A stretch of 64,000 bases of DNA from the sequence record AP018399.1, one strand, 5' to 3'. This document shows, piece after piece, positions 25,054 to 28,082 of this stretch. How positions within the stretch are numbered: position 1 is the first letter of the stretch; each line of letters begins with the position of its first letter. Under the pieces are notes generated by a model. That model searched no databases, had not been told where the DNA came from, and saw only the letters and a program-made list of their open reading frames with translations. The position numbers and the translations under genes were made by a program.

Positions 25054-26244
25054 TTAGTAGTAGCGGTTTGAACGAGTTGTGACACGATAGTTCGGGACAT
25101 GCAGCCTATTCAGAAGCGAGCCAGAACGATTGTTTGAAGCCCAATCACCACGTTCCAGTTCGAAATGATAGAAGAAAATGGTGGTTCCTGTCAAGACCAA
25201 AAGCTGGATAATTACAAACCAGAGAATGGCAGAGTCAGACGGCGAGTAATCTTCCTTGAGATATTCGAAGTCCTTCATGGCCTTGCGGTGGAAATCACTG
25301 GTGATTGTGGTCACCAGTACGTCCGACAACATAGTGGCATTACCGAACTGCTGACGAGTCACCAAGTCCTTGATGCGGTCACGCAGAAGTACAGCGAGCA
25401 TTTCGTTACCAGCGTTCTTACCGAAGGTCATGGTATCGACCCACGAGAAGGTGTTGTCGGCATCCATACCCACGATGACATTCACGTCGTTCTTCTTGCC
25501 ACCCAGCCATGCACGCTCAAGAGCGTAGCGGTAGTTGGTGTCGGTCGTCTTGACGAAGAGAACGTTGATGTTTACCTGCTTCGACGGTCCAAGGGTGCGA
25601 AGCGCCATGTTCAGTAAATCATTAAGTTCTTTGGCCTGCGGATACGTCACACCCACTTGAATCACACGGTTGATGCGGTAGTAATCGTAGATTCGCGGAT
25701 ACTTAGGAATCAGCGCACCGTACTTGGCCGCATCACCCTCAAGGTTGTCCATCGCGAACAGGCTCTTCGGAGCAGCCTTCACGTAATTGACATAGGATTG
25801 AGTGTTGGATGCCGGTTCTCCAATCTGAACCATCGTCCAGCGAGGCGGTTCCTCGGTACCCTGACGGTTGATACGGTCAATCTCAAGGTTACCGACGCTG
25901 GTGTAGACTCGCCAGTCAACGTCGTAGGAATGTTCGTAGCACGTCGAGCAATGCTGTGTGCAGGTACGAGTCTTGCCGGTGCTTGAGCAAGTGGTGTAGC
26001 AGTTGCAGCGGTACGAGTGTCCGCAGGAAACCTTGACACGTTCCTTGCCGGTAACCTGACCATTGATGATGGCGGTATCGCCCATGTCCTTGTAGTAGAT
26101 GGCAAAAATCACCATGATACTGACAACCGTGGCGATGCCAGCTTGGAGCAAGGCTTCCTTAAAAGTAATCTTGTTCTTGAAAATCAGATGCACCGCAGCA
26201 GCCCAGAGGATGACGACGATGAGGTTAATGACGAAAATTGCCAT
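25054..26244 (-). CDS. Membrane protein (two N-terminal TMs, Cys-rich segment, periplasmic domain, C-terminal TM)
   Basis: Hydrophobic ends; CGHSYRCNCYTTC...CTQHCSTC; start set to ATG 26244 downstream of a consensus promoter. Confidence 0.75.
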   Translation of the reverse strand: MAIFVINLIVVILWAAAVHLIFKNKITFKEALLQAGIATVVSIMVIFAIYYKDMGDTAIINGQVTGKERVKVSCGHSYRCNCYTTCSSTGKTRTCTQHCSTCYEHSYDVDWRVYTSVGNLEIDRINRQGTEEPPRWTMVQIGEPASNTQSYVNYVKAAPKSLFAMDNLEGDAAKYGALIPKYPRIYDYYRINRVIQVGVTYPQAKELNDLLNMALRTLGPSKQVNINVLFVKTTDTNYRYALERAWLGGKKNDVNVIVGMDADNTFSWVDTMTFGKNAGNEMLAVLLRDRIKDLVTRQQFGNATMLSDVLVTTITSDFHRKAMKDFEYLKEDYSPSDSAILWFVIIQLLVLTGTTIFFYHFELERGDWASNNRSGSLLNRLHVPNYRVTTRSNRYY

Positions 26245-26272
26245 TTGGGTGGTTGTCCTAAGTTGAGCCGCT

Positions 26273-26301
26273 ATAATAAACCAACAACATAGACTTGTCA
26301 A
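26273..26301 (-). promoter_or_regulatory. Sigma70 promoter TTGACA-17-TATTAT
   Basis: Consensus -35, 17-nt spacer, 5/6 -10; upstream of the membrane operon. Confidence 0.8.
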
Positions 26302-26308
26302 TAGGGCG

Positions 26309-26350
26309 TAAAAAGAAAGCCCCGAGTCCGCCTAAGCAAACTCGGGGCTT
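26309..26350 (-). terminator. Rho-independent terminator after the structured RNA
   Basis: 11-bp stem AAGCCCCGAGT/ACTCGGGGCTT followed by TCTTTTT. Confidence 0.85.
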
Positions 26351-26354
26351 CCCG

Positions 26355-26592
26355 ACTGTGATGGTGTGCTGTTACGCCAAATGCTCTAAGGGTCTTGGTA
26401 TGCGTTCGACTTATCGTGTGCCACAATTGTCAGCCGTTGAGTCTAGGCTTCGCCCTTCGACCATACATACCAAACTGCGCTTGTCCTTCCCCTCGTGTTC
26501 TACGCCCATCCGCAAGGCACATGCTTTGGGACCGGTTCCACGTCGCAATTCTTTAAAGGATGGCTGCTTCTAAGCCAACCTCCCATCACAGT
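26355..26592 (-). ncRNA. Structured ncRNA mimicking the 23S rRNA GTPase-associated centre (H43/H44, L11 site) with a 170-nt insertion
   Basis: Minus strand reads ACUGUGAUGG-GAGGUUGGCUUAGAAGCAGCCAUCCUUUAAAGAAU-[170 nt]-GCGUAACAGCACA-CCAUCACAGU. The flanks match E. coli 23S 1051-1108 (GCCAGGAUGUUGGCUUAGAAGCAGCCAUCAUUUAAAGAAAGCGUAAUAGCUCACUGGU, recalled) and the ends form a perfect 10-bp closing stem. Confidence 0.85.
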
Positions 26593-26605
26593 TCAGGAGC
26601 GGATA

Positions 26606-27256
26606 TTACCCGAACTTCTTTTGCAAGTCAAGTCGGATGCCGTTGGGCTTGATGGCCTGATGCATCCAGTGTTCGTCAGTCTGAACATGACCCTTGCGGA
26701 CGTACTTCATGACATACTTGTCGAACTCTTCGTACAGGATTTCATCCGCGATTCGCAGAACAGCACCTTCAATCCTTGAAGTATCCAGCGATTCGCAGAT
26801 ATCACGAATCACCTTCTCATCGTAGATTCCATCGTACAGAACCTTGACGTGCGGCATTCCCAGACGGCCTACGCTAACAGTGTAGTCCCAATCATAGCAC
26901 TTGGTACCGTGCCATACGGAGAATACGTAGAAGTACGATTCCAGTTCTTCGTAGACAACCGAATGCTGGGCGTACATATTCTCGCCACAAATTCGGTCAC
27001 CATCCGGAATCATCCAAGCATTTTCCGCCCAAATGCGCTTGACCCAATCACGGCTAGGGTGATGGGCACTATCAATCGAACGGGCATGAATGCCATCCCG
27101 ATACATGGTCGTGTTTTCACCATCCATCTTCTCGGTCAAGATGACACGACGACCGTTGAACTGGTCGGTGGTCTTGATTACTTTGTCGTCCGACTGAACG
27201 CCCGGTGACCACGGCATATGCATGGTCCGGGGGTACTTGAATCGGTTGGCTTTCAT
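26606..27256 (-). CDS. ATP-dependent RNA ligase (single nucleotidyltransferase domain)
   Basis: KYPRTxHxPWSPG, motif I TEKMDGEN, ICGEN, YFYVFSVW, IEGAVLR, KYVR. Confidence 0.88.
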   Translation of the reverse strand: MKANRFKYPRTMHMPWSPGVQSDDKVIKTTDQFNGRRVILTEKMDGENTTMYRDGIHARSIDSAHHPSRDWVKRIWAENAWMIPDGDRICGENMYAQHSVVYEELESYFYVFSVWHGTKCYDWDYTVSVGRLGMPHVKVLYDGIYDEKVIRDICESLDTSRIEGAVLRIADEILYEEFDKYVMKYVRKGHVQTDEHWMHQAIKPNGIRLDLQKKFG

Positions 27257-27285: not shown

Positions 27286-27314
27286 ATTATAACAGCTTAC
27301 GGGTTCCCTTGCAA
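27286..27314 (-). promoter_or_regulatory. Sigma70 promoter TTGCAA-17-TATAAT driving RNA ligase and ncRNA
   Basis: Consensus -10, 17-nt spacer, 4/6 -35; ~30 nt upstream of the ligase ATG (AAGGA SD). Confidence 0.75.
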
Positions 27315-28082
27315 GGCGTAAGTGTTACGCAACTGGAAGATTTGACCAGTGTTAGGGGCCATAGGCTGAACGCCAACAAGGTCTTGGGCAATCAGGCCGG
27401 GGATGATACGGCGATACGTTTCCACATCTAAGCCACCGGCTGACATATCGACAATACCAATCTCGTCTTCATCTGCACCGCCATGTAGAAGCCTGTCGGC
27501 CATATCGTCAACGTCATCGCAGACGATAACGAAACGAGCGCCGTTGTAGATTTTGGTCATGCGACGAAGTGGCACAGTGTCATCGGTCAATGACTGATAT
27601 GTCTGCTGGCCTAGCACATACTCTCTACGCTGCCCAACTCTTGCGCGACAAATATGCATCAATTCGAATAGATGCTCTTCGGTATTTCGGTCCGGAATGT
27701 CAAAAATGTATACGTCGCTAGTCAAAGCGCCTCGCATATACTCCGGTCGCAGGATTGATTCAATGGATTCAACTTCAAGGGTGTTATAGTCTGCCTTGAA
27801 TACTCCACGAGCCTTCTTGCAATGCCCCAAGTCTTGGAACATTCTATCAACAGCGTACTTACTATGGACACCAAAAGTAATTTCAATAGGGTCTTCGGAA
27901 TACAAGAACTCCCATTCTGCGTAGTTGCTCAGGGCTGTAGTGATACCATGCATACGCTTATATGGAATAAGCGTGAATTGGCAGCTATCCATCGCATTGA
28001 TGATGTTCTGCTGAGTCTTGGTCGGGAATCGTCCTGTCTTATCCAAGAAGAACGTAGTGGGGTCAATTTTAAAGTGTGCCAT
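27297..28082 (-). CDS. Hypothetical protein ending in a copy of a major-capsid-protein motif
   Basis: C-terminal RRIIPGLIAQDLVGVQPM vs MCP RRIIPGTIATELVGVQPM. Confidence 0.7.
   Translation of the reverse strand: MAHFKIDPTTFFLDKTGRFPTKTQQNIINAMDSCQFTLIPYKRMHGITTALSNYAEWEFLYSEDPIEITFGVHSKYAVDRMFQDLGHCKKARGVFKADYNTLEVESIESILRPEYMRGALTSDVYIFDIPDRNTEEHLFELMHICRARVGQRREYVLGQQTYQSLTDDTVPLRRMTKIYNGARFVIVCDDVDDMADRLLHGGADEDEIGIVDMSAGGLDVETYRRIIPGLIAQDLVGVQPMAPNTGQIFQLRNTYALQGNP

Follow-up and report, generated by a model that had tools for sequence, protein, structure and literature searches.

The genome of the Xanthomonas citri jumbo phage XacN1 (AP018399.1, 384,670 bp) carries a stand-alone RNA gene within the 64,000-nucleotide (nt) stretch that we analyzed (hereafter the window, to which all coordinates refer unless otherwise noted). 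By sequence and covariation, the core of this RNA is a faithful copy of the 58-nt domain of 23S ribosomal RNA (rRNA) that binds L11 and thiostrepton, comprising helices 43 and 44 (H43 and H44) of the GTPase-associated center (GAC). A 170-nt insert splits the copied H44, and a sequence-only reading of this DNA had proposed that the insert is a group I-like or degenerate ribozyme, a protein-processed intron, or a switch to be removed from the RNA. Comparison with a family of at least 103 distinct instances on phage and metagenome contigs leads us to regard it as a permanent folded arm of the GAC-mimic RNA and not as an intron, a reading to which we assign a probability of about 0.8. More tentatively, we suggest that these RNAs may act as decoys for ligands that normally recognize the ribosomal GAC.

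Core and arm of the XacN1 RNA

Under a permissive threshold, positions 1095-1146 (H43-H44) of the Rfam large-subunit (LSU) model LSU_rRNA_bacteria match 26584-26534 of the window (19.2 bits, E 7.8e-4). The core was examined across 25 RNAs carrying the XacN1 class of arm (type A), a set free of bias on the core because it was collected through arm motifs. H43 and H44 are 90-100% paired by pair count in these sequences; the H43 pairs 1062-1064/1074-1076 (E. coli numbering) are invariant, and 1058-1080 is found as U-A, A-U, G-C and C-G. Invariant positions include G1062-C1064, U1066, G1071, A1073-A1077, U1081, U1083, A1085, G1087, U1090, G1091, G1093, U1094, A1098 and C1100-C1102, with U1060 and A1088 kept in at least 90% of the sequences. 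As the sequence-only reading had pointed out, removing the insert leaves an H44 of canonical length, as can be read from the sequence, and U1090 and A1101 are paired in all 25 type A RNAs and in 100 of the 103 family instances.

The base triple 1072/(1092-1099) is C/C-G in 14 of the type A RNAs and U/U-A in the other 11, with no mixed combination; across the 103 instances the corresponding counts are 90, 11 and 2 mixed. Conn, Gutell and Draper reportedly established this triple for the rRNA domain in 1998, with the same isosteric alternatives. Since covariation of the triple is retained, the core is, on this comparative evidence, selected for the rRNA tertiary fold. The closing stem P1 covaries freely and retains no sequence of helix 42 (H42). 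With a plain variable stem in place of H42, what was copied is the minimal uL11 site, probably lacking the site for uL10.

Relative to the rRNA GAC (E. coli 1051-1108), the phage RNA has near-identical loops and junction, the same helices and the same triple covariation, with U1060, A1088 and 1082-1086 conserved. It differs in being free-standing, in carrying the arm and its linker UUUG between 1090 and 1091, in having an A at 1101 that forms a Watson-Crick pair with U1090, and in the variable stem that takes the place of H42. The window contains no complete 23S rRNA gene (no rRNA at gathering score in the 64 kb), protein genes flank the RNA, and the RNA has its own terminator; for these reasons we regard it as a mimic and not as rRNA.

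In the structure supported by covariation, the arm departs from H44 between U1090 and G1091 by way of the short helix Pa, followed by the linker UUUG, and forms a nested three-way junction of Pa, Pb/Pc and Ph-Pd (Table 1). We evaluated 47 proposed pairs across the 25 type A sequences: 89.2% of the cells are standard pairs, and in 32 pairs both partners have changed. The set of pairs scores 0.521 for covariation, compared with 0.138 for shuffled data (the observed score is reached in 0 of 500 shuffles) and 0.06-0.14 when partners are slid by one to three columns. An independent RNAalifold run on 14 sequences yielded the same helices. The alignments were made with MAFFT and are somewhat out of register in Pc and Pg. 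The minimum free energy fold of the excised 170 nt recovers Pa, Pb, Ph, Pd, Pf and Pg, at an energy no better than that of shuffles.

Individual helices follow the same pattern. All three pairs of Pa show changes on both sides and are 97% paired, with UGC/GCA swapped for UCG/CGA, GAU/AUC or GUC/GAC in relatives; in Pb the values are 4/4 pairs and 94%; and Ph is 99% paired, its first pair A-U being exchanged for C-G. The internal loop next to Ph has the near-invariant consensus GGGGAARRAYAAGYRYAG, with GAAGGACAAGYRYAG facing GA, and a column-pair scan of the 25 sequences found no partner column for it. A sarcin-ricin-like interpretation of this loop (AAGUAC...GAC) was rejected: its 'GUA' varies to GUG, GCA and GCG, and three extra bases precede the helix.

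In XacN1, the Pc loop GUGCC is complementary to the Pg loop GGCAC, and relatives keep the two loops complementary through other sequences (AUCCC/GGGAU, UCACA/UGUGA, AUAUCAC/GUGAUAU, CACCAC/GUGGUG, UUCGU/ACGAA and UUCCA/UGGAA). A loop-loop contact between Pc and Pg probably exists, by which the distal Pf/Pg part would dock back onto Pc; the longest-complementary-run statistic discriminated poorly for this kissing loop. One type A RNA on a contig outside XacN1 (L013:3147-3437, minus strand, the same RNA as L036) has a second insertion: following GCAGCCA (about position 1077), the 3' strand of its H43 is interrupted by a hairpin of about 36 nt.

Table 1. Features of the XacN1 RNA gene and its surroundings, in window coordinates
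Feature	Position	Strand	Evidence
Promoter-like site TTGACT-17 nt-TAATAT, sigma-70-like, stopping a few bases short of the closing stem	26603..26631	-	Consensus scan, 9/12 matches
Predicted folded RNA, GAC-mimic core plus arm, 236 nt from closing stem to closing stem	26356..26591	-	Covariation-supported structure
P1 5' strand CUGUGAUGG, H42-like closing stem (partner 26364-26356)	26583..26591	-	Both-side changes in 8/9 pairs, 25 relatives
H43 mimic (E. coli 1057-1081), including the 1067 loop GGCUUAGAAGCAGCC	26557..26581	-	Rfam LSU match
UUAAAGAAU: 1082-1086 junction and H44 5' strand (G1087...U1090)	26548..26556	-	U1081, U1083, A1085, G1087, A1088 and U1090 invariant or near-invariant
Arm of 166 nt plus 4-nt linker UUUG (26381-26378)	26378..26547	-	Arm at the same site in all 103 paired instances; type A class
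Pa 5' strand UGC (partner GCA 26384-26382), closing helix of the arm	26545..26547	-	Covariation
Pb (CGUG 26542-26539 / CACG 26497-26494) around hairpin Pc (26530-26505, loop GUGCC 26520-26516)	26494..26542	-	Covariation (Pb); sequence and single-sequence fold (Pc)
Ph 5' strand AGGG (partner CCCU 26392-26389), then 15-nt asymmetric internal loop GAAGGACAAGCGCAG	26475..26493	-	Covariation and conservation
Pd 5' strand UUGGUAUGU (partner 26403-26395)	26465..26473	-	8/9 pairs with both-side changes, 96% paired
Pf hairpin AGGGCGAAGCCU (conserved GGGCNNAGCC)	26445..26456	-	Outer pair covaries (C-G, U-A, G-C, A-U); inner pairs invariant
Pg hairpin CGGCU 26436-26432 / AGUCG 26411-26407, loop GGCAC 26422-26418	26407..26436	-	RNAalifold covariation, 14 sequences
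H44 hairpin and 3' strand GCGUAACAGCAC (1091-1102, including the 1095 loop)	26366..26377	-	1092-1099 covariation
Putative terminator hairpin GGGAAGCCCCGAG...CUCGGGGCUUUCUUUUU, G+C-rich, with U-run	26310..26353	-	Read from sequence
Strong promoter-like site for ORF259	26301-26273	-	Promoter scan, 11/12 matches

The RNA lies on the minus strand in a 361-nt gap between open reading frame (ORF) 260 (26606-27256) and ORF259, where the XacN1 record annotates no RNA gene; minus-strand positions 26240-26610 correspond to record positions 150240-150610 at 100% identity. From its flanks inward the element reads CUGUGAUGG-GAGGUUGGCUUAGAAGCAGCCAUCCUUUAAAGAAU / 170 nt / GCGUAACAGCAC-ACCAUCACAG. The family profile (nhmmer) matches the window once, at 26594-26358 on the minus strand. 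No Rfam family reached its gathering score anywhere in the 64 kb, including rRNA, intron, leader and GOLLD/ROOL models, and ARAGORN found no transfer RNA (tRNA) in the window; the terminator region gives weak matches to Rfam terminator-like small RNA models. We read this anatomy as a stand-alone RNA gene of about 285 nt whose promoter and terminator are consensus matches. In being located outside a tRNA cluster and having its own promoter-like site and terminator, the XacN1 copy is atypical of the family.

ORF260 (minus strand) is described in the record as a 2'-5' RNA ligase and matches Pfam PF09414 RNA_ligase, the ATP-dependent RNA ligase family (6e-26, 92 bits). It ends 15 nt before the closing stem of the RNA, and the promoter-like site of the RNA falls inside its 3' end. 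The next gene, ORF261 (27297-28082, minus strand, 261 amino acids), has a short match, confined to residues 223-256, to the N-terminal part of the Gp23 major capsid protein family PF07068 (33 bits), which may reflect a motif resembling a prohead-protease cleavage site rather than a capsid protein.

Distribution and context of the family

BLAST searches of phage records found the rRNA-like core in Pseudomonas, Aeromonas and Acinetobacter phages, mostly within tRNA clusters, and at the loci that we read, a large insert interrupted the core at the identical H44 position every time. A second BLAST added Cronobacter phage GAP32, Pectobacterium phage CBB, Serratia phage BF, several Erwinia jumbo phages, Xanthomonas phage XbC2, a Vibrio phage, Ralstonia phage RSP15, Pseudomonas phage UNO-G1W1 and Paenibacillus phage Pd_22F. 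The named carriers span at least ten host genera, and none of their records annotates an RNA gene at the match.

Scans with motifs of the XacN1-type insert matched 14 distinct IMG/VR loci, 16 metagenome loci and one genome contig. The last of these, in Arthrobacter livingstonensis (L037:2325-2345), lies within G+C-rich coding sequence, does not match the family profile and is attributable to chance. A 21-nt pattern spanning the type A arm and H44 had no cellular copy in 185,579 species genomes, a search that covered neither the other arm classes nor the core, and the XacN1 arm showed no similarity to E. coli genomes at E<=1. Generic scans for the 5' core and for the 3' core gave at least 120 matches each; pairing of 5' and 3' core modules across 241 loci defined the 103 or more distinct instances.

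All 103 instances share the order ...AAAGAGU-[arm]-UUUG-GCGUAnnAGCAC, in which conservation of the UUUG is partly imposed by the search patterns. Arms range from 29 nt, a simple hairpin at three loci (L045, L069 and L130), to about 330 nt, and fall by all-against-all BLAST into 44 clusters, of which type B (26 members) and type A (24 members) are the largest and the rest are mostly singletons. In 94% of instances the first bases of the arm can pair with the bases preceding the linker over at least three consecutive base pairs, a proportion that falls to 17% in controls combining the 5' end of one instance with the 3' end of another. This closing helix occurs only in the register that leaves a 4-nt linker, and it is built from more than 20 different base-pair triplets. 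The arm is therefore inserted at one constant point of a conserved core and closed by a helix, and its length and sequence are hypervariable.

Of the 103 instances, 49 have a tRNA gene no more than 100 nt away and 61 no more than 500 nt away, the tRNA gene always sharing the strand of the RNA; for comparison, 32% of locus positions are as close to one. All-against-all BLAST of ORFs within 3 kb revealed no conserved neighboring protein, the best cluster covering 6 of the 103 instances. On the upstream side, tRNA-Pro is the closest tRNA in 10 of 38 cases; downstream, tRNA-Met takes this place in 8 of 41. Against a background of about 5-6% each, these values are suggestive and uncorrected for phage relatedness. 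On a 536-kb IMG/VR contig (L012:2721-3121, minus strand), a type A RNA sits between tRNAs and a full-length transfer-messenger RNA (tmRNA; 145 bits) about 130 nt away.

Several phages carry type A and type B RNAs in tandem (L003, L006, L010 and L021). In the first of these, Pseudomonas phage Astolliot, the type A RNA (2152-2489 of its locus) and the type B RNA (2489-2680) are arranged head to tail, with a tRNA-Met a few bases further on, and the two copies differ in their triple: U/U-A in type A and C/C-G in type B.

A permanent arm or a removable insert

The proposal of an intron rested on strings that are all present on the minus strand: the upstream flank ends in GAAU at 26548, the insert runs from 26547 to 26378 (UGCGACG...GCAUUUG), GCGUAACAGCAC follows from 26377, and the motifs likened to group I P, Q, R and S elements are AAUUGCG (26550-26544), CGCAG (26479-26475), AGACUCAACG (26444-26435) and GAUAAGUCG (26415-26407). 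The pairings drawn between these motifs found no support. The P/Q pairing UUGCG-CGCAG shows no covariation; its UGC pairs with GCA at the 3' end of the insert, and relatives with UUCGG or UGAUG at the insert 5' end retain AAGUACAG or AAGUGCAG at the other P/Q site. As for R/S (GACU-AGUC), the AGUC of GAUAAGUCG belongs to the Pg 3' strand AGUCG, whose partner is CGGCU (26436-26432) and not GACU, and CGGCU overlaps AGACUCAACG only at its last CG. Covariation among homologues, which had been suggested as a check, supports the helices of a fixed arm and not the group I pairings.

What the comparative data do support is the counter-suggestion made in the same reading, that the insert could be an expansion-segment-like domain. 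A structured insertion at precisely this H44 site is borne out by covarying helices and by an arm at the same position in all 103 instances. The helix of about 11 bp named there as competing with the group I fold (26475-26465 with 26403-26392) is Pd, and of the suggested closing helix AAUUGC/GCAUUU the UGC/GCA core is confirmed as Pa; the pairing of both exceeds chance by far. Like rRNA expansion segments and the 23S intervening sequences (IVSs) excised by RNase III (H25, H45), the arm has a fixed insertion point, a closing helix, and lineage-variable length and sequence; unlike them, it belongs to an RNA outside the ribosome, and it enters the side of a stem via a three-way junction and not a hairpin tip. 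A paper on the tolerance of rRNA to insertions contained nothing on 23S H44.

A minimal or degenerate group I intron, or another self-splicing or self-cleaving ribozyme that leaves a canonical 58-nt GAC mimic, would account for the U preceding the insert, the G ending it, the canonical-length H44 left on removal and the existence of one arm-less homologue, and the insert does resemble group I introns (RF00028) in being structured, about 170 nt long and placed within an rRNA-like helix. We nonetheless consider this very improbable. The Rfam Intron_gpI model matches neither the window at gathering score, nor 26200-26700 at E<=10, nor six homologous loci at E<=1, and the other intron and ribozyme models, GIR1, HDV, hammerhead and twister among them, likewise have no match at the latter two thresholds in those regions. 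Permissive Rfam scans of the window region and the homologous loci returned only the LSU fragment, terminator-like small RNA noise, and tRNAs or tmRNA, with no riboswitch, GOLLD or ROOL. The first bases of the insert are used in Pa, which leaves no P1 or internal guide sequence; the sequence-only reading had itself failed to find a P1, and in XacN1 and in 94% of the 103 instances the insert's 5' bases have their partners at its 3' end, not in the upstream flank. No P3/P7 pseudoknot is seen among the covarying helices, which form a nested three-way junction plus a hairpin-loop contact. Finally, 44 unrelated arm classes occupy the one site, down to an arm that consists of just a 25-nt hairpin and the 4-nt linker, and this is the pattern of a variable structural arm rather than a mobile intron. 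The U...G boundaries and short P/Q/R/S-like strings are insufficient for calling a group I intron.

Excision by proteins is a somewhat less remote alternative that we also consider improbable: a nuclease of the host or the phage would cut out the arm without ligation, and P1 and H44 would keep the two remaining pieces of the GAC mimic together. IVSs of 23S rRNA are cut out by RNase III, and rRNA can lose them without loss of function. The arm has a helix at its base, as an IVS does, and the XacN1 RNA adjoins an RNA ligase gene, but this neighbor is not conserved across the family, and the closing helix is mostly 3-5 bp, far below an RNase III substrate. In the arm, moreover, numerous bases outside the helices are conserved, as is a tertiary contact, which would not be expected in a discarded segment. 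We therefore infer that the arm is retained in the mature RNA.

Several points weigh against a permanent arm and the decoy role that we propose for the RNA. That the insert is not spliced is a conclusion from comparative anatomy only. The U before the arm and the G ending the linker are conserved as at group I splice sites, the G being partly fixed by the search patterns and having no P7 to bind it. Among the 90 distinct arm-agnostic 5'-pattern matches listed, one copy lacks the arm: an IMG/VR contig (L236:4337-4414, plus strand) has an isolated 78-nt H42(top)-H43-H44 element covering LSU positions 1080-1157 (65.5 bits, above the gathering score), with no other part of 23S found at the locus. 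Single-sequence folding is uninformative (z is -1.4 when the entire RNA is folded and +0.9 for the isolated arm). The Pc-Pg contact tested in fixed columns is 73.6% paired (reached in 1 of 500 shuffles), with a moderate covariation of 0.214 against 0.149; the test is only moderate because the loop register shifts between sequences, and we grade the contact as probable for that reason. In the core, A1067 and A1095 are common yet not invariant. The sampling was pattern-based, so that diversity and frequencies are biased, and the decoy function is an analogy and not a result.

Possible roles of a phage-encoded GAC

Under our proposal, the RNA would bind, as a molecular mimic, a ligand that normally recognizes the ribosomal GAC, and would serve as a decoy or sponge during infection. 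The first candidate is uL11, the simplest choice, whose minimal site is copied. L11 has an established role in RelA-dependent stringent signaling, and titration of uL11 could, speculatively, blunt such signaling or alter factor use. Alternative ligands would be toxins or factors directed at the GAC, such as Tre23-type ADP-ribosyltransferases that modify H44. Toxins of this kind exist: Tre23 ADP-ribosylates H44 at about 1095-1098 and blocks the EF-G GTPase (PMC8661411). Phage tRNAs counter tRNA-targeting defenses (PMC10264068, PMC11464382), and by analogy the RNA may be a bait for GAC-directed toxins. We put forward the decoy or sponge function as a tentative proposal, at less than even odds.

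Stability is probably one contribution of the arm. Its conserved unpaired motifs and the presence of two arm classes in one phage suggest that it probably also offers a second binding surface, specific to the class. A different division of labor, in which the arm does the work, as an aptamer, a ribozyme or a module that binds protein, and the copied GAC is a common handle, for instance for stability or uL11 docking, seems unlikely to us, if less so than excision of the arm. Phages of widely differing hosts share the type A arm, whose unpaired motifs are near-invariant, and its occurrence in tandem with type B in one phage suggests that the two are not redundant. The GAC core is, on the other hand, the sole element common to all 103 instances, arms shrink to a 25-nt hairpin or are missing from one copy, and the XacN1 arm matches no known RNA family and no E. 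coli genome. The position of the RNA in the gap upstream of ORF259 could also point to a cis-regulatory leader or switch for that gene, or to a functionless captured fragment of host ribosomal DNA, both of which we regard as highly improbable. ORF259 is set apart from the RNA by a terminator followed by a strong promoter-like site of its own, and relatives have unrelated neighbors, mostly tRNAs. Leaders of ribosomal protein operons (L1, L10, S15) also mimic the site of a ribosomal protein on rRNA, and they are cis-acting mRNA leaders upstream of cellular ribosomal protein genes; the phage RNA, by contrast, is separate and terminated, lies near tRNAs and not ribosomal protein genes, and matches no Rfam leader. 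Against captured ribosomal DNA, covariation of the helices and of the triple indicates purifying selection on the fold. The U/U-A triple of gammaproteobacterial (Pseudomonas, Acinetobacter) phages also differs from the C/C-G of the Rfam bacterial LSU consensus, host 23S rRNA not having been compared, which argues against recent capture from the host.

The GAC-mimic RNAs resemble T4 rnaC/rnaD, GOLLD, ROOL and theta ribozymes (PMC10879173) in being phage-encoded, structured and located on the same strand near tRNA genes, but share no sequence or model similarity with them, and none of those RNAs contains an rRNA domain. We considered T4 rnaC/rnaD as possible homologues and rejected them after reading their sequences directly, which are not GAC-like. 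No Rfam 15 family covers the GAC-mimic RNA, and a full-text literature search found no description of the family. If it is indeed undescribed, it would be, to our knowledge, the first known case of viruses encoding a stand-alone functional rRNA domain.

Taken as a whole, the most far-reaching picture, again short of even odds, is that large phages of many hosts carry GAC-copy RNA genes with an interchangeable arm at one point of H44, usually among tRNA genes, as decoys for uL11 or for GAC-directed toxins or factors, and that these would protect or re-program translation during infection; the XacN1 arm would then represent one of the two main pseudoknotted arm classes, which would contribute a second specificity. 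If true, this would add a piece of rRNA to the translation-related cargo of phage tRNA islands. It would also offer a handle on which host or phage factor reads the GAC off the ribosome, and on whether defenses attack the GAC. A hypervariable arm on a constant core would in addition serve as a natural experiment on the tolerance and use of insertions by an RNA domain.

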